From: Vitrella brassicaformis CCMP3155
Lineage: Eukaryota; Protista; Chromerida
Assembly (NCBI GenBank): GCA_001179505.1
Contig: CDMY01000274.1
Span: 62,001-126,000, forward strand
Length of the DNA stretch: 64,000 nucleotides
Direction: 5' to 3'
Shown in pieces: positions 5,422 to 36,673 of the stretch. The notes beneath the pieces are model-generated. The model saw only the letters and a program-made list of their open reading frames with translations, made no database searches and was not told where the DNA came from. The position numbers and the translations under genes are program-made. Each line of letters starts with the position of its first letter. Position 1 is the stretch's first letter.

Positions 5422-5721
5422 NNNNNNNNNNNNNNNNNNNNNNNNNNNNNNNNNNNNNNNNNNNNNNNNNNNNNNNNNNNNNNNNNNNNNNNNNNNNNNN
5501 NNNNNNNNNNNNNNNNNNNNNNNNNNNNNNNNNNNNNNNNNNNNNNNNNNNNNNNNNNNNNNNNNNNNNNNNNNNNNNNNNNNNNNNNNNNNNNNNNNNN
5601 NNNNNNNNNNNNNNNNNNNNNNNNNNNNNNNNNNNNNNNNNNNNNNNNNNNNNNNNNNNNNNNNNNNNNNNNNNNNNNNNNNNNNNNNNNNNNNNNNNNN
5701 NNNNNNNNNNNNNNNNNNNNN
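5422..5721. other. Assembly gap (300 N)
   Basis: N run; the same length as the other three gaps, so the true size is probably unknown. Confidence 0.99.
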
Positions 5722-12351: not shown

Positions 12352-13971
12352 NNNNNNNNNNNNNNNNNNNNNNNNNNNNNNNNNNNNNNNNNNNNNNNNN
12401 NNNNNNNNNNNNNNNNNNNNNNNNNNNNNNNNNNNNNNNNNNNNNNNNNNNNNNNNNNNNNNNNNNNNNNNNNNNNNNNNNNNNNNNNNNNNNNNNNNNN
12501 NNNNNNNNNNNNNNNNNNNNNNNNNNNNNNNNNNNNNNNNNNNNNNNNNNNNNNNNNNNNNNNNNNNNNNNNNNNNNNNNNNNNNNNNNNNNNNNNNNNN
12601 NNNNNNNNNNNNNNNNNNNNNNNNNNNNNNNNNNNNNNNNNNNNNNNNNNNCTCAGGGACCGACTCAAACGCACCAGGCACTGAATACGGACCAACAGAC
12701 AGACACATATGGCACATGTGGCCATGAACGTCCCTTCGTTTTTGGCTCACCCGTGTCAGTATTGTTGTCGGCCACAGGGCGGCCATAGCCGAACTCAGCC
12801 CCGCAGTGGGCCGGGCTGGTCTCAAACGCTGAATGACAACGCGGAATGGACAACATGGATGAGTGAGTGAGTGTCTCTGCTAGTTGCGTGCATACCTGGC
12901 TGCCACACCGGCCGGCCCCACGGCGACATCTGACTCGGCGCCGCTTCCACCTGTGTAGCATTGACGGGCGGGGGCAGCTGGGCGGGCGGCGGCGGGTCAA
13001 TGACGGCGGGCTGGGCGCCTGCAGTCAACCAAGGGAGAGGAGATGAATGCGTTCACACACGTCCATCATGATGGATAAATGCCCTTGTTCGGTCGCTCAC
13101 CATGTCAGCCACGCCATCCTCAGGCACTACCACCTCGCCGTCGTGCTCATTGTAGCCCTCCTCTCCGTAGACGCCGGCCAGGCCCTCGCCGCCCGTCTGC
13201 GAGTGTGGCTGGCCCTGGGCGATGGCAGGGCGGGAGCCGCTGCTGCTGCGGAGGAAGCACACACACAAGTGAGAGTATCAGTGAGTCCATAGGACGTTCT
13301 CCCCTCTCGTCATACCGGGGGCATCCTGGTGGAGTGCCTCCATCATCTCGCAGCGCCGTTGCCACTCGGCCGCCATGGCTTTGTAGTATCTGAACGAATA
13401 GTTGCGGTACCCGAGGAAATAGAGAATTGAGAACACAATGTTATATCATGTCGACATGTCTTCTTACTCGATTTGACGGTCCCGCTCGTCGAGCTCGGCA
13501 AGGTATTCGGCGTGCTGCTGGTCCTGCATGAAGGACACACACAAAGGGGAAGGACACGTACGTCACATGAATGAGATGAGTGGGCGCTTCGTTCGTGAGT
13601 GGACACATACCAGCTGTCGCTGCGTGGAGTATCTGTAGTATTCCTTGGCGGCCTCGCTCTTGTGTCTGTATGGACGTCAAAGGAGCGAAAGGCAACACAT
13701 CCACACCCATATGTACAAACAACATCTACATTGTCTGCCATACTTACATTTCCTCTCGACAGTACTGAGAGTGGCGGGTGAACATGGCGAAGGTGGGCGC
13801 CACGGCGGGCTTGAGGGCCTCTGGCTTCTTGCTGCTCTCAGTCACGGCCACATATATGCAGACGGCCAGTATTGACAGGCCAAGCCCCAGCAGGACGTAG
13901 AGCAGCCTCTTGAGCATCCTGTCGGCGGGGCAATCGGGGCATTGCTGGGCGCTGTATACTGTGAATGTGGT
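11024..13971. repeat. About 1.3-kb near-identical duplicate, 11024-12351 versus 12652-13971, separated by a gap
   Basis: Colinear sequence with scattered substitutions and small indels, for example SILAGIVYV versus SILAVCIYV; similar but not identical. Confidence 0.9.
12352..12651. other. Assembly gap (300 N)
   Basis: N run. Confidence 0.99.
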
Positions 13972-17222: not shown

Positions 17223-17522
17223 NNNNNNNNNNNNNNNNNNNNNNNNNNNNNNNNNNNNNNNNNNNNNNNNNNNNNNNNNNNNNNNNNNNNNNNNNNNNNN
17301 NNNNNNNNNNNNNNNNNNNNNNNNNNNNNNNNNNNNNNNNNNNNNNNNNNNNNNNNNNNNNNNNNNNNNNNNNNNNNNNNNNNNNNNNNNNNNNNNNNNN
17401 NNNNNNNNNNNNNNNNNNNNNNNNNNNNNNNNNNNNNNNNNNNNNNNNNNNNNNNNNNNNNNNNNNNNNNNNNNNNNNNNNNNNNNNNNNNNNNNNNNNN
17501 NNNNNNNNNNNNNNNNNNNNNN
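17223..17522. other. Assembly gap (300 N)
   Basis: N run. Confidence 0.99.
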
Positions 17523-18338: not shown

Positions 18339-21300
18339 ATGCAGCGAAGTTCTTCTCGCGCGCCAGAGGAGAGGAGATCGAGCGAGGAGGTGGCGCAGAG
18401 CGAGCATGGCGCACAAGACACGATAGACACGCGAGATAGCGGCCAGGCCGCCACCAGTGCTGAAGTGTCCGCAGAAACCACGGCCCAGCCACAGCAGAAG
18501 GCCGTATCACCATCCCCTTCCCCCTCCCCCTCCCCTCCCCACCACCCCCCTCACCCCCCTCACCAGTCGTCCGAAGCGTCGGAGGAAGAGACCCTGCTGC
18601 AGAAGTCCAAGTTCCTCTCACAGGACGCCCACGCGCACACGGCGGAGGAGCCGCTACCCGTGGGCGACGGCCACTTCACGCAGCCATCGCAGTTCGGCGG
18701 GGGTGAGTCGCTGAGCCCACTCATGGCGCAGCTCTCGCTTGCCCGCGACCGCAGCGGGCCTGACCCGCATGATGTGTTGAAGTGAGCGCCACACACACAC
18801 ACACACACACAATATACCCGCAAAGATGATGCGTGGTTGTCGGTGTGTGGGGATGTGTGTGATCTGCACACAGGTGGACGGTGGACGACACTGCGTCGTG
18901 GCTGGGTCAGAATTCGCTGGGTTTGCTGGCTGACAAGTTCCGCGAGCACGGTATCTCGGGTGACGTGTTGTTTGAGGTGACCCGTGAGGACCTGGCAGAG
19001 ATGGGCATCACATCGGTGGGCGACCGCCGCCGACTGCTCAGGGCCATCGACCAGCTCAAGATCGACGCAAACGCCAGGGCCAGCTACTCGGTCGACCTGG
19101 CCGTTGTCGGGTGAGTGAGCTGAGGCAGCGAGGAGGAGGAGAAATGACCTGAAATGACCTGACCACACCCCGCACCCCGCTCGATGCACCACGAAGTCTC
19201 GACGTGTGGCTTATGTTTGTGTGATAGGTGTTCGCCGTTGGTGTATGTCGACCCTGGCACAGGGGCGTTCAACCCGCTAGACCTGCTCGACGTGGACAGC
19301 GAGCAGGAGCTGCTCGTCCGGGCCATGACGGACGCAAAGCGGTCGTGCTCATACCTCTTCTCGTACGGCACCGCTGAGTCACTGTCGCACATCATGCAGC
19401 TGGGTAAGTGAGTGAGCACAAGAAGGCGCACAGACGCACGTGGGTGATGGTTTGCTGTGCGTGTATGTGTGCAGGTTGTCAGGTGCTGCATTTCACTGGC
19501 CACACGACGCCCGAGGGCAAGCTGCTGCTCGAGAACTCCTCGGGGGGCGCCACCGAGCTGCAGGCCGACTCACTCTGCGACCTCTTCAGGTGAGATGGCA
19601 GCGGTTTCCAGCCGTCTGTCAGTCAGAATGGGCCTCATGTGTGTTGTGTGTGGGTGGTGTGTTGGTGTTGGTGTTGGTGTCAGGTCGCCTGGCCCGTCGA
19701 GTTTTGTTCAGCGCGGCACGTCGTGCCAGTGCGTGGTGCTCAGCAGCTGCAACTCGCGAGCCGTCGCATCCGCATTGTAATCACCACCACCACCACACAA
19801 CGCAATAAACAAGACCTAGGCAGCAGTCGCGTGTGTGTGTGTGTGTGTGTGGATCGGCCGGTCAGTCTGGATGCGGGAGCTCAGCACGTGGTTGCGGTAG
19901 AGACGGATCAGAAGGTGTTGGACACGGCCGCCCGCAAGTTCGCCTACGCCTTCTACCACTCTTTGTTGGTCGGCAACTCCATCAAGCAGTCCTTCAAGCA
20001 CGCCTGCTGGCTCGTCAGACACTCGCCGGAGATCCCCTCGCCACAGCAAGAGGTACCTACACACCTCTCACACGTGTGCGCGAGGGCATGGTTGATGCGT
20101 GTGCTGTCTGTTTTGGACAGTCGAACAAGTTTGTGTTGCTGCCGGCGGCTGCCGACCACTCGGAGGTGCTCTTCTCATCACTGCCGACGGGGCTCTTCGT
20201 CGACAGGTATATCTGGCGTAAAGTGGTGCTTGTGGAAACGTGTGAATGTGTTGTGTGTGGTGTGGTGTGGTGTGCGCAGGTCGATCCGTCGTGCGACGGC
20301 GAATTTGCCGCACATCAACATGGATTTGGTGGTGGGGCGGCAGGTGGAGATGTGGGAGGTCAGCAGGGCCATACAGTCGCCAAAACGATTCATAGTGGTA
20401 CGTGAGCAACCCCCACCCACACACACTGATGCCCAGAACACTCCTCATCGTTTAGTGTGTGTGTGTGTGTGTGTGTGTAGATTGTGGGTGCTCCAGGCAT
20501 CGGCAAGTCCACCCTTGCATGTGTAGTGGCGCAGTATGCTTGGTACGGCGCACACCACACGCCAGGCACACTCCCTCCCTCCCATAAAGAGCCCGCCTCA
20601 CTGTGCGAGTGGTGTCTGTGTCATGACGTCGTGCCCCACAAACGTCAGGAAGCGGAATTGGTTTCCCGAGGGCGTGTCGTGGATGCCGCTCAAGGGCCTC
20701 AAGTGGGTCGAGGGCGTCAGCGGCACGGCGTGCTCCACTCTGGGGGCGTCGTCTGACCCCGACACACAGCAGCCACTGCCGCACATCAACGGCAAGAGGC
20801 TCATCGTTTTCGATAACGGTGGGTAAAATGCGGTGCGGTGCGCCCCAGGGGTTTGTGCGTGTGTGGTGTTGTATGCTGGATCGGGTGTGTTGTTGGCTTT
20901 GTTTTGTTTCAGCTGAGGATTTGCTGCGTCGGACGCCGCGGCGGTTTCTGGCGTGGGTGGTGCAGCTGCTGGACTCATGCCCGCACCTCAAGATCCTCCT
21001 AACATCGCGACGAATCATCAAACCGGCCGGTCAGACAGACAGACAGACAAACCTACTGTACCGACACAGGGATAACGTGTGTGCGTGTGTGTGTGTGTGT
21101 GCAGATTTGCCCGAGAAGTGTCCGTTGGTTCCGAAGCACATCCATTTGCGTGAGCTGGACCGCACCAACTCTGTCCGGCTGCTGCGGCAGCTCTGCCCCA
21201 ACATGGACGTCGAACCAGCCGCCAGAATTGGAGACCTCTGCGGACACCTGCCACTCGGTAGGTTACCATAACCAACTCACACACACACACACCCCCCACC

Positions 21301-24300
21301 ATCTCCCCCTCTCTCTCACTTGTGTGCTTCATTCATGTGTTCATTCAGCGTTGCGTGTGATCGGCCGTCTGCTGGGCAGCCGTCCTGACATGACGCCTGA
21401 GTCAGTGGCGGCATCGCTTGAGAGGGACTCCGACCACGACCTGACCCTGTCGCTCTCCGAGTACGCGGCCTGCGTGCAGCCGTCGGTGGAGGCCCTCGCG
21501 GAGCCGCTGCGGCAGGCCCTGACGACGCTGAGCATCTTCATCGGGCACTTCACGCTCGAGGGTGCGAGTGCGTTGCTCAACGAGGACTTCGAGCACACCC
21601 GTCAGATCCTGGGCCTGCTTTTCGAGAGCAAGCTGGTCGAGTTCGAGAGCACCATCAACAGCTACTTCGTCCACACGCTCATCCGGATCTACCTCAAGAA
21701 GGCCCCGCTGCCCCAGCAGCCCTCGCTGCGTGCCGAGATCCGCTGCAGGTTCGTCCTCTACATCACTCAGGTCATGTGGCGGGTCGCCCACCACTACGAT
21801 CTCATGACCAAGCAGCAGGCGCACGAGAAGCTCTACACCCACCAGCACCCTCAGACACCCGCCACCACCACCAGCAGCGCAACTGTCGCCCCATCCCCTG
21901 GCCCCGCAGCCACCCCGGGCACCGCCAGTGGCCACCACGGCGGCCCCGCGCCCTCGTCGCCGTGGGCGGCCGGGCAGGCCGCGCTGCGGCTCTTCGATCG
22001 CGAGCGGCCCAACATCGAGCTGGCCCTCGACCTGGCGGGCTTCACGCCTGCCTTTTTCGCGCTGCTGCAGCTGGGCAAGGAGGTGTTCAAGCGGCGCTTC
22101 GAGGCCATGCGGCGGGTGGAGCTGTACGAGCGTGCCTTGGGGATCATCATCGCCGAGCTGATAGGGCAGAAGATGCCGAGTGAGAGGCCGGGAGAGGTGG
22201 CTGGGGGGATGGGGGTGGGGGTGGTGTCCCGTGCGGCAGACCATGAGGGCGCGAGCGACAGGCTGGTGAGGAAAAGCAATGACAGCGCAGGCACTGCCAA
22301 GGCTGCACAGGTGAGAGGGGAGGGAGTGGGGGAGGGTGGACGGGACGGGCCGCAACAGTGCATCTCACTGGTTGGTTCCGTGCATGTGTTTGTCATTCTG
22401 GTCAGAATGAGATCGAGATGGCGAGCCTTGTCAATCCTGACATCGACTACGACCTGCTGGCCGACCTGGCCAGCTCCACCGGGGTGGTGCCGCAGCCCGA
22501 CCCTGCCACCGCCGCCGAACACCCATTCCAGATGAGCAACACCATCCTCGGCAAACTCGACATGTCACAAACGGTGAGCAGCAGAACCGACCATACCATC
22601 AGACAATAGTCGTTCTCGCTCTATGTCTGTGTACCTGTTGATCAATCAGTTGGAGGCGCCCGTCACGTCCCCCTCTCGCGAGATCACCCCCGAGGCGTGC
22701 TTCCCGCCCTCATTCTACCTCCTCTCGCCCTCAGACGAGCTAGACGCCCCGGAAGACCTCCCGCCCCCCGTCGGCGGCCACACACACGCCGGGCAGAAGA
22801 CCACCATCAAGCTGGGCGAGCACCACTACCTCTACCTCCCCTTCCCGGCTGCAGCAGACAGCCACGCCCACGCCCACACCCACACACCACCTGCTGCTGC
22901 TGCTGCTCCAGGGGCTGGTAATGGTGGCGGCCACTCGAGGGACACATCGATGCTGGCGGCTGATGCGCTGGTCAACGCACTGCAGAGCGGCAAGGCCACG
23001 ATGGAGGACGCCTGCCGGCGTGCGGCCGAGGGCACCATGGTCTTCTTGTCGGCGCAGCTTAACGTCAAGCGGCGGCCTGACTTTGACGGCGGGTGCATCA
23101 GCAGCGAGCAGCTCAGCAGGGACAGGCTGCGCAAGACCCTCACCGAGTTCGCCGCCACGTACATGCAGCGGTCCCTCAGCACGGGGGTGGGCGACATCGA
23201 TAGAGACATGCCGCCTCCTCTCTCGCTCGACCGTGACGTGAGCGCCCTTTCTGCGCTGTCAAACCACAGCCGCGTGAGCCGCCTGACCGCGCCGACTGAG
23301 GGATGGTGGTGGGACAGAGACGCCACAACCACAACCACACCAGCAGCCGAGGGGCCTTCCTCTCCCATCCCCGACGAGCCATCCGCAGCCACAGCCACGG
23401 CCACGAGCACGGCCAGCAGTGGGCGGTACAAGGTGTTGTCGGACATCCTGTTCCAGCTGGGCTACGCCTACCGCGACATGGGCCTGGTCTCCCATGCCGC
23501 GGCGCTGGTCAAGGTGGCCATGAACCTCGTCCCAGTCCCCGTCGACACCCTCTCGCGCGAGAGCAGCGACGCCCGACACGACCAGCCGCAGCCGCACCCC
23601 GTCTGCTGCAGCACGGCCATCAGTGGCGCCGGGAGGGGCTCCCCACGACACGGCAGGGACAGGTGCATGCTGGCGGGGCGCCCGGAGATCCATGTCGTCG
23701 CGGCGGAGGAGGAGGCCACCCAGCCGGCGGGGGCTGCCGAGGGCCACGAGGAGCTCGCGCATCGGGGGGTGCACGAGGAGAGGGAAAGCCGCCGCACCGT
23801 CAGCCCGGCCTCCGAGCAGTCGGCCAGGTCGAGCGACGGCGTCCCCGCGACAATCAGCACGGTGGGCGGCGTCGACAGCGAGAGGGAGAGGCGGCGGATC
23901 ATGGCAACGCACCGGTCCGAGATGGCGTCGCTCGAGGCCAAGCTCATGTGCGACCTGGGGTATTATGACGAGGCAGGCCGGTACTTCCAGGAGGCCCTCG
24001 ACATAGTGGAGGCGGTGGGGGCGCCCGTGGCGCAGAGCGAGATGCACGCCCGGCTGCTGTTTGCCCTGGCGGTGTACTGGTGGGACTACCGGCACAACGC
24101 CTCCATGGCCCAGCAGTTCTACCTCAGGTGTCTGGAGCTGCGGCAGCGGCTCAACCCTGGCGGCCTGCAGACCGCCCACACCATGACCAGCTTCGGCGTC
24201 GTCTGCGGCAACTGTGGCGAGCTAGAAGCCGCCAGAAAGTCAGTATGCCGTCGAAACGCCGTACACGCAATCCGTTTTCCACCTCTGTCTCCGTCTGCCC

Positions 24301-26339
24301 CTCTCTCTGTGTGTGTTTGCAGGTTGTTGGAGTGTTCGCTGCAGATCAAGCGTCGCCAGCTGGGCCGCAACCACCCTGAGGTGGGGTTTGCTTACCACGA
24401 CCTCGCGACGGTCATGGTGGCCAAGGGCGACTACCGCAAGGCCGAGTGCCTCTTCAAGAAGTCCCTGGCGCTGAAGCAGCAGGTGCTGCCCGAGTACCAC
24501 CTCAAGATCGCCGAGACCGTGCACAGGCTGGGGCTGCTCTACGAGACCCAGAAGAGATTCAGAGACGCCGTCCCGCTGTTCAGGTGAGCGAGCAGACAGA
24601 CAGCAGACACTGGCTGGCAGGCGGAGAGGGAGGTTTCTGGGCTCATCTGTGGTGTGTGTTCCGTCCCGTCTTGTGTGTGTTTCAGGCAGAGTCTTCGTGC
24701 CTACGAGATCGCAGGGGCGGCAGCGAACTTCGCCGACTCGGCTGCAGAGCTGGGTGCGACCCTGCTGCGGCTGCTGCCGACCCCCTCGTGTGGCGAGGAG
24801 GCGGACGGCCGCGTCCCGCTGGTTATCATCAACACCGTCACAAACGCCACCACGACCCATGACGAGCAGCACACGGAGCGACACACCCTGCTGGAGGAGG
24901 CCTCCCTGCTGCTGCAGAAGAGCCTCGAAGTGCGGGTGCGTGACCAGCCAGCCACACCACACCACACCACACACACAACGCATCGATCGTCCACAGCGCC
25001 ATTTCCTCGTTCGCTGTGTGTGTGTGTGTGTGTGTGTGATGTGCAGCGATCTCTGCGTAAGGACCCCCACCTGGCGCGCCACCCGAGCATCGGCTCCAAC
25101 GACGTCGACGACAGCCTGGTGCTCGCCGCCACGCAGCTCAACGTCGGCTGGATCCTCCTGGAGAAGCACCAGCCCAGAGTGGCCGAGGACTACATCCGCT
25201 CGGCACTCGAGCAGCTCGAGCAGCTCCGCGACTACATCCCCACCATCCTCCCGCCCGCGCCGTCGCCCGAGTTCGGCGCCAGCGCCATCGACCGTGGGAT
25301 GCCCACGCTCGACCTCCCGTCGACCTCGGACAAGGGCGGCGAGGCGGTGGGCGAGGAGATCGACCCGTCGTACTACGACCAGGTGGAGAGGGAGAGGATG
25401 CTGGCCCGAGAGGAGCTCCTCGGCAAGCTCAGGCAGTGCAAGGCCGAGCTCTGCCGTGGCTACTTCCTGCTGGGGCGGTGTCTCTACGAGCCCACCACAG
25501 CCGCAGCCACAACCACCACCGCCCCCAGCTACGCATTCGGCGAGCAGACGGAGGGTCAAACGTTGCCAGGATCCGACGAGTTCCACTGTGCGGGCGAGAT
25601 GCTGTTGGCGGTGTGCCGCGACAACTGTGAGGCGCGCGAGCGGCAGGTGGCGAGGCAGCGGTGCGAGAAGCAGAAGGTGCTGGGGTGGCAGGCCAAGCTG
25701 CAGGCGGTGTTTCTGATCCTCAAGAAGGAACAGGGCCTGGGCAGCATGGCCAAGCTGGGCCCTGTCGAGGAGGACGAGGACGACCATCACCTGGGGACTG
25801 CCGACGGCCTCGGGGGTGGCGGTGGTTTTGGCGGTGGGGGGCCGGCAGAGACTGATGGAGTGGCACCTTTACCGCTAGGTGGGTCACCCAACCAACAGCA
25901 CAGAACCAGTGAGCCCTCGTGTGTCTCATGGTGTGGTGTCTTGTGTGCAGTGTCTGAGGAGATCACTGTGTTGGGCCGGTTTCTCAACCACGACCTCCAC
26001 GCAGCCATCGCAGCCATCATGACGCCCCAACAGACCGACATCGACACCACCGGTGCGGCCACTCTCCAGCTGCCCCAGGCAGCAGCAGAAGCCGAGACAG
26101 AGCGGCCCTCGTCGATCCAAGCAGAGGGGCCGCCTTCTCGGCTGGCCGCTGCGGCCAATGCCGTGCTGTCGCCCTCCAGGGGCTCCTGCGTGCCGCAGTT
26201 TGGTTTGACTGGCCAGCCCACCCCCACACGCACACGGCACCCCGGTGGTGGTGTTGGTCGTGATGCCGTGTTGGTGCCCATGGGTGTGGAGCACCGGCAG
26301 AGCAGCATCGAGGAGGAGCCGGAGGCTGAGAAGGACTGA
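18339..26339 (+). CDS. NLR-like protein: SAM - CHAT (caspase-clan) protease - STAND/NB-ARC NTPase - winged helix - TPR repeats
   Basis: SAM: WTVDDTASWLGQNSLGLLADKFREHGISGDVLFEVTREDLAEMGITSVGDRRRLLRAI. CHAT: VLHFTGH, VVLSSCNS, AFLDAGAQHVVAV, FAYAFYHSLLVG. Walker A: GAPGIGKST. Walker B: LIVFDNAE. Also ILLTSR, CGHLPLALRVIG and YFVHTLIR. TPRs include ECSLQIKRRQLGRNHPEVGFAYHDLATVMVAKGDYRKAE. All junctions read as in-phase GT-AG. Confidence 0.9.
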
Positions 26340-36373: not shown

Positions 36374-36673
36374 NNNNNNNNNNNNNNNNNNNNNNNNNNN
36401 NNNNNNNNNNNNNNNNNNNNNNNNNNNNNNNNNNNNNNNNNNNNNNNNNNNNNNNNNNNNNNNNNNNNNNNNNNNNNNNNNNNNNNNNNNNNNNNNNNNN
36501 NNNNNNNNNNNNNNNNNNNNNNNNNNNNNNNNNNNNNNNNNNNNNNNNNNNNNNNNNNNNNNNNNNNNNNNNNNNNNNNNNNNNNNNNNNNNNNNNNNNN
36601 NNNNNNNNNNNNNNNNNNNNNNNNNNNNNNNNNNNNNNNNNNNNNNNNNNNNNNNNNNNNNNNNNNNNNNNNN
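36374..36673. other. Assembly gap (300 N)
   Basis: N run. Confidence 0.99.

Follow-up and report, generated by a model that had tools for sequence, protein, structure and literature searches.

The stretch of the Vitrella brassicaformis CCMP3155 genome studied here (contig CDMY01000274.1, positions 62,001 to 126,000; hereafter the window, 64,000 nucleotides in its full length, to which all positions refer) carries at positions 18339-26339 one intact, transcribed and spliced gene that codes for a protein of 2144 amino acids. We interpret its product as a single-chain signalling protease of a chromerid alga in which a SAM domain, a CHAT-type protease, an NB-ARC-type STAND NTPase and a TPR array are combined in one polypeptide, and which would operate as a switch resembling that of the NLRs (proteins that join a nucleotide-binding domain to leucine-rich repeats); we put the probability of this interpretation at roughly 60%. 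CHAT-NLR-like proteins are already known from bacteria and fungi (PMC8851545; PMC7159879); what is new here, within this known kind, is the fusion to a SAM domain and the alveolate host. From its amino-terminus onward, the protein is built from a low-complexity head, the SAM domain, the CHAT module, the NTPase, a long linker and an array of TPR_12-type repeats, with the following features in the window:

18339-26339, plus strand: whole gene; 18 exons, 17 GT..AG introns, product of 2144 residues; the open reading frame (ORF) closes without an interrupting stop and is colinear with homologues
18339-18781, plus strand: exon 1 head, residues 1-147; low-complexity, rich in Ser, Pro, Ala and Glu; no Pfam family
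18875-19060, plus strand: SAM domain, residues ~149-210, inside exon 2; Pfam SAM_2 and SAM_1
19228-20206, plus strand: CHAT caspase-fold module, residues ~228-445, exons 3-7; from homologue alignment and the family profile against 8TL0
19501-19503, plus strand: codon of the predicted catalytic His295 in VLHFTGHT (second His of LHFTGH); family His column
19748-19750, plus strand: codon of the predicted catalytic Cys346 in VVLSSCNS; family Cys column
20487-20513, plus strand: Walker A motif (P-loop) GAPGIGKST, residues 488-496; from the family alignment
20800-20817, plus strand: Walker B motif LIVFDN, residues 557-562; an acidic AED follows after the intron 20819-20912
20993-21013, plus strand: ILLTSRR, an hhhTxR motif; column conserved in the family alignment
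21242-21353, plus strand: GxP motif GHLPLAL, residues 648-654; split by the RNA-confirmed intron 21258-21348
21351-22265, plus strand: part of exon 13 with the end of ARC1, winged helix, helical domain and a low-complexity insert; from an AlphaFold2 model
22406-23945, plus strand: linker, residues ~959-1446; mostly low-complexity, no recognised domain; holds the intron 22574-22649
23946-25487, plus strand: TPR_12-type array, residues ~1447-1861; interrupted by the introns 24239-24322, 24584-24685 and 24936-25046; degenerate toward the carboxyl-terminus
25488-26339, plus strand: carboxyl-terminal tail with Gly- and Ala-rich stretches; no recognised domain

When the exons are joined at GT..AG sites chosen to keep the frame, a coding sequence of 6435 nucleotides results that is free of stops after splicing and extends from the ATG at 18339 to the stop codon at 26337-26339, with an in-frame stop three codons 5' of the ATG. 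A first-pass annotation of this DNA had described the SAM, CHAT, NTPase and TPR motifs as lying all in phase; this is correct once the 17 introns, which are 68-140 nucleotides long, have been removed, whereas on the raw DNA the coding pieces occupy all three forward frames. Its positions for the His codon, the Cys codon and the P-loop proved exact on the spliced model. The guanine-plus-cytosine (GC) content is 0.66 in the exons versus 0.55 in the introns, the window as a whole is eukaryotic DNA of high GC content whose introns are short, and it contains a single copy of the gene. The alignment with homologous proteins is free of gaps at every exon junction, including those that lead from the tail of the CHAT module to the P-loop, and in the multiple alignment the donor site at 20543 is preferred over that at 20534. 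Given the stop-free coding sequence, the contrast in GC content between exons and introns, and homologue matches down to E 1e-103, we regard this as a real gene, far beyond chance. The exons and the RNA-confirmed introns are:

18339-18781, 18874-19110, 19228-19403, 19475-19589, 19684-19776, 19866-20052, plus strand: exons 1-6
20121-20206, 20280-20397, 20481-20542, 20649-20818, 20913-21029, 21105-21257, plus strand: exons 7-12
21349-22265, 22406-22573, 22650-24238, 24323-24583, 24686-24935, 25047-26339, plus strand: exons 13-18
19111-19227, 21258-21348, 22266-22405, 24239-24322, 24584-24685, plus strand: five RNA-confirmed introns, with GT..AG joints found solely in the RNA-like runs X7 and X1

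Public sequencing runs carry the window stretch nearly word for word. In the DNA-like runs X3 and X5, the contigs follow the window colinearly and retain the introns, and contigs from the RNA-like runs X7 and X1 skip exactly five GT..AG introns, from which it follows that the gene is transcribed and spliced. Moreover, pieces of X7 contigs end within one base of where exon 2 starts (18874), where exon 3 ends (19403) and where exon 10 starts and ends (20649, 20818). The other 12 introns were deduced from their GT..AG sites, the closure of the ORF and the gap-free homologue alignment. We rejected a pseudogene in view of the intact ORF and of the transcription and splicing seen in these runs.

The presence of SAM, CHAT with its His/Cys dyad, STAND NTPase, winged helix and TPRs in one gene, as the first-pass annotation had proposed, is borne out by the spliced ORF and by colinear homologues. 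A search of the full library with exon 13 (HMMER) yielded 36 proteins, and several of these relatives, 1382-1838 amino acids long, carry SAM, CHAT, a STAND NTPase (with matches to NB-ARC, NACHT or nSTAND1) and TPRs according to Pfam. They comprise P0003 and P0040 (ORFs from transcriptome shotgun assemblies), P0006 (JGI), P0007, P0010 and P0032 (transcript-sized Logan contigs) and P0009 from the dinoflagellate Tripos fusus (MMETSP1075); P0096 and P0097 were found later. P0002 from the archigregarine Digyalum oweni is shorter and represents the NB-ARC-TPR part only. With P0032, P0003/P0040, P0006, P0009 and P0007, residues 143-660 of the spliced product share 33-37% identity in colinear alignments (E 1e-72 to 1e-103). 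As this alignment is free of gaps and each relative is one ORF on one transcript, they validate both the gene model and the layout on one polypeptide. Judged from these sequences, the SAM-CHAT-STAND-TPR design recurs among other alveolates, at least one dinoflagellate included, and it is also kept in several marine eukaryote transcriptomes.

The SAM domain is recognised by Pfam in the window's own exons (SAM_2, E 6.2e-18, 65.2 bits, cut-off 20.5; SAM_1, E 1.1e-15, 58.1 bits, cut-off 23). Its closest solved structures are the SAM domains of Shank3, Caskin-1, DGK-delta and SARM1, all of which form polymers, and this likeness in sequence gives a hint that the SAM domain of the Vitrella protein may polymerise as well.

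The assignment of the CHAT module relies on the spliced protein and its relatives. Residues 220-470 match the CHAT regions of relatives with E 1e-43 to 1e-48 (BLASTP), and Pfam recognises CHAT in P0003 (38.7 bits, 1e-9), P0071 (41.7 bits), P0080 (60.9 bits) and P0078 (104 bits) at a cut-off of 24 bits. A profile built from ten CHAT regions of the family matches SAVED-CHAT (PDB 8TL0, the filament in its activated form) with E 2.9e-21 and aligns the family His and Cys columns to His355 and Cys402 of the 8TL0 chain, which correspond to H375 and C422 of SAVED-CHAT (spacing 47, offset 20). These two residues lie 3.8-4 Å apart in SAVED-CHAT, and the double mutant is inactive (10.1101/2023.06.23.546230). 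In an AlphaFold2 model of the CHAT region of P0006, a relative with 41% identity (predicted local distance difference test, pLDDT, of the model 81), the corresponding His86 follows the strand 78-84 and Cys136 the strand 130-134. Foldseek places 8tl0 at the top of the matches to this model (E 8e-12, TMq 0.60), followed by DdvA (a CHAT anti-sigma factor), caspase-11, separase, caspase-6 and CED-3. The window protein keeps both residues of the dyad in these columns, and it may accordingly act as a peptidase.

The NTPase carries the motifs GAPGIGKST, LIVFDN, ILLTSRR, GHLPLAL and FVHTL in the order that is typical of the NB-ARC/AP-ATPase group; ILLTSRR we take to be the sensor-1-like motif of NB-ARC-type NTPases. 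The winged helix contains LSIFIGHF (21528-21551) and, within 21660-21695, VHT (FVHTL) at the MHD position, a column that reads MHD in P0003, and the helical domain behind it harbours a conserved block at 21984-22034. The AlphaFold2 model of exon 13 (pLDDT 77) displays a wing of helix-strand-strand-helix form and finds its best matches in the NB-ARC regions of plant NLRs and resistosomes, CED-4, Apaf-1 and Dark, in MalT and in an archaeal STAND-TPR protein (Z 9.9-12.8); generic winged-helix regulators score somewhat lower (Z ~9). In the relatives, Pfam matches NB-ARC in P0003 (37.8 bits, 1.7e-9), P0080 (36.6 bits), P0002 (27.7 bits) and P0007 (24.3 bits) at a cut-off of 23.5, and nSTAND1 and NACHT score at similar levels. 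The sequence motifs and the model favour the NB-ARC branch of the STAND NTPases, a placement for which the profile scores alone do not separate NB-ARC from nSTAND1 or NACHT. We rejected an assignment to NACHT because both the structural matches and the motifs of the GxP and MHD type point to NB-ARC.

The carboxyl-terminal repeats match TPR_12 in four stretches of exons 15-16 (E 1.9e-22, 79.6 bits, cut-off 30.1; 34 and 59 bits for the individual exons) and are colinear with the TPR arrays of the relatives; in the last exon, both Pfam and a search for look-alike proteins detect only weak TPR-like signals. For the disordered linker of ~480 residues, Pfam found no family and the look-alike search returned nothing. 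Pfam detected no leucine-rich repeats in the exons of the gene and the carboxyl-terminal repeats are TPRs, so that the protein falls outside the NLRs in the strict sense; we consequently call it NLR-like only in the broad architectural sense in which this term is used for fungal and bacterial proteins. No death-fold domain (CARD, PYD or DD) was detected by Pfam in any exon, and the protease is fused in cis.

These features lend themselves to a model of how the protein might operate, based on the analogy with Apaf-1/CED-4 and their proteases caspase-9 and CED-3, with NLR-like proteins of plants, fungi and bacteria, and with SAVED-CHAT. At rest, the protein would be kept closed by the NTPase, with ADP bound, together with the TPR array. 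Binding of a ligand by the TPR array would then permit nucleotide exchange and oligomerisation, and the resulting oligomer would cluster the amino-terminal CHAT domains and thereby switch on proteolysis, in cis or on substrates in trans. The SAM domain could provide a second layer of self-association or, alternatively, recruit partners. Immunity or regulated cell death would be the likeliest biological output, and is at the same time the least supported step of the model; likewise, an inflammasome-like function, as suggested by the first-pass annotation, can be entertained by analogy only.

Little is understood, in molecular terms, of how unicellular alveolates carry out regulated cell death and innate sensing; the group includes coral-associated chromerids, bloom-forming dinoflagellates and relatives of the apicomplexan parasites. 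A protein that unites a switch of the Apaf-1/plant NLR type with a caspase-fold protease possessing an intact dyad on a single polypeptide could provide a compact model for the activation of a protease through STAND oligomerisation, for the adaptation of bacterial conflict modules by eukaryotes through addition of a SAM domain, and for the part that NLR-like receptors might play in the 'programmed death' of protists. A bolder proposal, which we consider unlikely in its entirety, is that of a working single-chain 'cis-apoptosome' of myzozoan alveolates (chromerids and dinoflagellates), assembled from a bacterial CHAT-STAND-TPR core and a eukaryotic SAM domain, in which sensing by the TPRs would lead to a SAM-reinforced oligomer whose CHAT domains execute death or immune signalling. 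If true, this would constitute a third, independent eukaryotic pathway of NLR-protease death, situated in a sister lineage of the apicomplexan parasites.

The precedents on which the first-pass annotation had drawn are real. A fungal TPR-CHAT protein cleaves a neighbouring gasdermin, and some HET-Q2-like proteases have an NLR architecture (PMC8851545). The Vitrella protein shares with the bacterial and fungal CHAT-STAND-TPR/WD40 proteins, including the HET-Q2-like ones, the amino-terminal CHAT, the central STAND and the carboxyl-terminal TPR region, but differs from them by its additional SAM domain, its alveolate host, a His-Thr in place of His-Gly and its very long low-complexity linker. Unlike the gasdermin-paired HET-Q2-like proteases, it is not accompanied by a gasdermin or other substrate family that Pfam could detect in the stretches flanking the gene: the ten longest stop-free stretches on its two sides (6-18 kb and 26-38 kb) matched no Pfam family, which is a weak test for a genome with spliced genes.

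The best solved counterpart of the protease, both by profile and by fold, is SAVED-CHAT from a Haliangium ochraceum hybrid of a type III-B CRISPR system and a cyclic oligonucleotide-based antiphage signalling system (CBASS), and its dyad aligns with that of the family. Its protease is switched on by oligomerisation driven by cyclic tri-adenylate (cA3) (10.1101/2023.06.23.546230). However, SAVED-CHAT senses cA3 through its SAVED domain and not through STAND and TPRs, forms filaments whereas a ring is presumed for the Vitrella protein, has a known substrate in a second caspase-like protease, and is with ~500 amino acids far smaller than the protein of 2144 amino acids described here. Csx29, the TPR-CHAT protease of the type III-E CRISPR Craspase, likewise combines TPRs with CHAT and is gated by a conformational change upon target recognition (general knowledge and the comparison in 10.1101/2023.06.23.546230), but it has neither STAND nor SAM, carries its TPRs amino-terminal to CHAT and is activated by an RNA-guided partner.

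With Apaf-1, CED-4 and Dark, the partners of caspase-9, CED-3 and Dronc, the Vitrella protein shares the NB-ARC switch with its P-loop, its GxP motif and its winged helix, in which a His occupies the MHD position. The logic would also be alike, since in these systems the caspase-fold protease is activated through the proximity that a STAND oligomer creates, as we presume by analogy for the Vitrella protein. In contrast to the apoptosomes, its protease is present in cis and belongs to the CHAT branch and not to the caspases of family C14, there is no CARD or death-fold adaptor, and TPRs take the place of WD40 repeats. SARM1 resembles the Vitrella protein in that a SAM domain stands beside an enzymatic effector, which in SARM1 is organised by SAM-driven oligomers, and the SAM domain encoded in the window matches SAM1 of SARM1 with E 2e-6 to 6e-5. 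It is closer, however, to the SAM domains of Shank3, Caskin and DGK-delta, and SARM1 differs further by its two tandem SAM domains, its TIR NADase, its ARM regulator and its lack of a STAND NTPase. Our literature searches brought up neither a report of CHAT-STAND proteins in connection with Vitrella, chromerids, dinoflagellates or alveolates nor a description of a SAM-CHAT-STAND fusion; the coverage of these searches was incomplete, so that absence is unproven, but the outcome agrees with the remark in the first-pass annotation that this architecture has not been characterised in alveolates.

The CHAT and NTPase modules also have counterparts in bacterial-type proteins. P0071, P0080 and P0078 align over CHAT and NTPase as a unit with ~28-30% identity, with E 3e-31 for P0071 (from a metagenome-assembled genome of the Bryobacterales) and E 1e-22 for P0080 (whose cluster includes a Roseiflexus protein). 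SAM is present in all eukaryotic full-length members seen and in none of the bacterial ones. A tree of 12 CHAT-NTPase sequences groups the window protein with most eukaryotic members (Shimodaira-Hasegawa-like approximate likelihood ratio test, SH-aLRT, 97) and leaves its root, as well as the placement of P0003 and of the bacteria, unsettled. It is plausible from these sequences that a bacterial CHAT-STAND-TPR module was acquired and subsequently fused to SAM; because of the unsettled position of P0003 and the bacterial proteins, the tree does not fix the direction of transfer.

A number of observations weigh against our reading of the protein, and they are brought together here with the alternative explanations on which they bear. 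Every mechanistic step outlined above is drawn by analogy. The TPR array encoded in the window is shorter and more degenerate than those of the relatives. Pfam scores the CHAT domain in the window's own exons below threshold (E 0.015, exon 6), as it does with the exon of the P-loop, which gives weak matches to nSTAND3 and NACHT (E 0.03-0.05), and several eukaryotic relatives score just below the CHAT gathering threshold as well. We attribute the weak CHAT and STAND signals on the raw window to the fragmentation of these domains into exons of 20-62 residues; the CHAT and STAND profile matches that the first-pass annotation had set as a check did not materialise for the exons themselves, but were obtained through the alignment of the spliced protein to relatives that pass Pfam. 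Furthermore, neither PADLOC nor NCBIfam assigned the relatives to a defence family, the only matches being generic TPR profiles and sub-threshold ones to FxSxx_TPR, AfsR and HaaT. A word search with full-length P0003 was dominated by generic TPR proteins.

The alternative that survives best, with a small but appreciable chance of being correct, accepts the architecture and the switch and assigns them to a housekeeping or developmental role, for instance in life-cycle proteolysis, in a stress response, or in a flagellar or ciliary function akin to that of the P-loop-TPR protein nephrocystin-3. The TPR array indeed matches TPR_NPHP3, one relative weakly matches NPHP3_N, and there are relatives of CHAT, such as separase and HetF, with functions in cell division and in development. 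In addition to the missing match to a defence family by PADLOC, the single intact copy in the window gives no sign of the large and variable families of paralogues that are typical of immune receptors. Decaying duplicate fragments elsewhere in the genome (see below) nevertheless suggest a turnover by birth and death, and outside the eukaryotes the nearest relatives are CHAT-STAND-TPR proteins of bacteria, of which one adjoins a restriction-modification system. The layout of effector, STAND and repeats is a hallmark of conflict and cell-death systems (PMC8851545; PMC7159879). A housekeeping regulator, just as a dead protease, would turn the Vitrella protein into an ordinary member of the large STAND-TPR class.

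We consider it improbable that the protein is a pseudo-protease scaffold, in which a non-cleaving CHAT domain would offer a surface for interaction or oligomerisation and the signal would pass through SAM or other partners. The signature His-Gly ... Ala-Cys defines clan CD. In its place, the window protein reads GHT and SSC, and all ten eukaryotic members carry Thr or Ala directly behind the predicted catalytic His, whereas GHG and (A)C are kept in 8TL0 and in the three relatives from bacteria. Since His-Thr replaces the His-Gly of clan CD, catalysis could be altered; yet, the backbone NH of Thr could serve in place of that of Gly. Two sister relatives have each lost one residue of the dyad and kept the rest of the architecture (P0010 has Tyr in place of the His, P0007 Thr in place of the Cys), so that part of the family would function without proteolysis, and this suggests, on the strength of the two substitutions, a pseudo-protease sub-lineage. 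In the window protein and in seven of the nine other eukaryotic members, however, both His and Cys are retained at an overall identity of only ~35%, and the strands and helices around the dyad are the best-predicted parts of the P0006 model. 

No single contig covers the span from SAM to the TPRs, and between the 5' exons and the half with the TPRs (18740-24739) the RNA-like contigs of X7 gain in depth by a factor of about five to ten, so that there may be a separate, shorter transcript for the latter. We ascribe the lack of a contig over the whole gene to breaks in the assemblies at short repeats (21032-21049, 21278-21292 and 22890-22907). These repeats are of the GACA, CA and GCT type, lie in introns and in the coding linker, and are common to many places in the genome; the assembly depth at such repeats spikes to hundreds. 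A 4004-nucleotide contig of X7 that starts at 22944 should extend ~900 nucleotides beyond the stop codon. For the rise in depth and the overrun, a 3' bias, a long 3' untranslated region (UTR), further exons or a shorter transcript are possible explanations. The first-pass annotation had named separate transcripts for the SAM/CHAT and NTPase/TPR parts as the outcome that would speak against its proposal; homologous full-length ORFs on single transcript contigs of other species argue against such a split, whereas the contigs of the window itself do not span the gene. An artefact of the gene model, with SAM-CHAT and NTPase-TPR as separate genes side by side or with a pseudogene in decay, would be in keeping with the missing RNA contig across the gene, the unequal 5' and 3' depth, the broken part-copies elsewhere in Vitrella and the fact that the annotated protein of this locus was not returned from the public protein collection, where a representative search with exon 13 and a word search with a Vitrella paralogue gave fragmentary paralogues only, but is made highly improbable by the stop-free ORF over 18 exons with canonical splice sites, by the gap-free alignment to full-length homologues of other species over all junctions, and by a 585-nucleotide X7 contig with a piece at 20648-20817, whose length fits exons 7-11 joined, as judged from that piece alone.

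The surroundings of the bacterial relatives and of the gene itself provide some additional observations. P0080 adjoins a restriction enzyme of the XamI type as well as a methylase of the Eco57I type, and it overlaps an ORF of 114 residues without family (L002:770-3339, L002:4337-4681), and 5' of P0071 there are ORFs of 82 and 206 residues, likewise without family (L001:5046-5980). These small ORFs are possible partners or substrates of the bacterial proteins; as those located upstream belong to no family, the bacterial neighbourhoods provide no clue to a substrate. In the window, four scaffold gaps of 300 N each are present (5422-5721, 12352-12651, 17223-17522 and 36374-36673), none of them within the gene. 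The third lies 0.8 kb 5' of the start codon, and the region of the promoter and 5' UTR is consequently incomplete.

Among proteins with a name, the gene product comes closest to CEM15715.1 and CEM15714.1 of Vitrella brassicaformis CCMP3155, which are encoded next to each other on scaffold CDMY01000468.1; these fragmentary paralogues bear out the chromerid origin that the first-pass annotation had considered probable. This scaffold (L003:5997-13807) contains three or four partial tandem copies with 75-85% nucleotide identity to the gene in the window, which are annotated within CEM15715.1, where they are fused to otubain and W2 domains, and within CEM15714.1. The copies cover the carboxyl-terminal half of CHAT and the region from ARC to the linker, and none of them includes SAM, the exon with the His, the P-loop or the TPRs. 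By their sequence, they look like decaying segmental duplicates.

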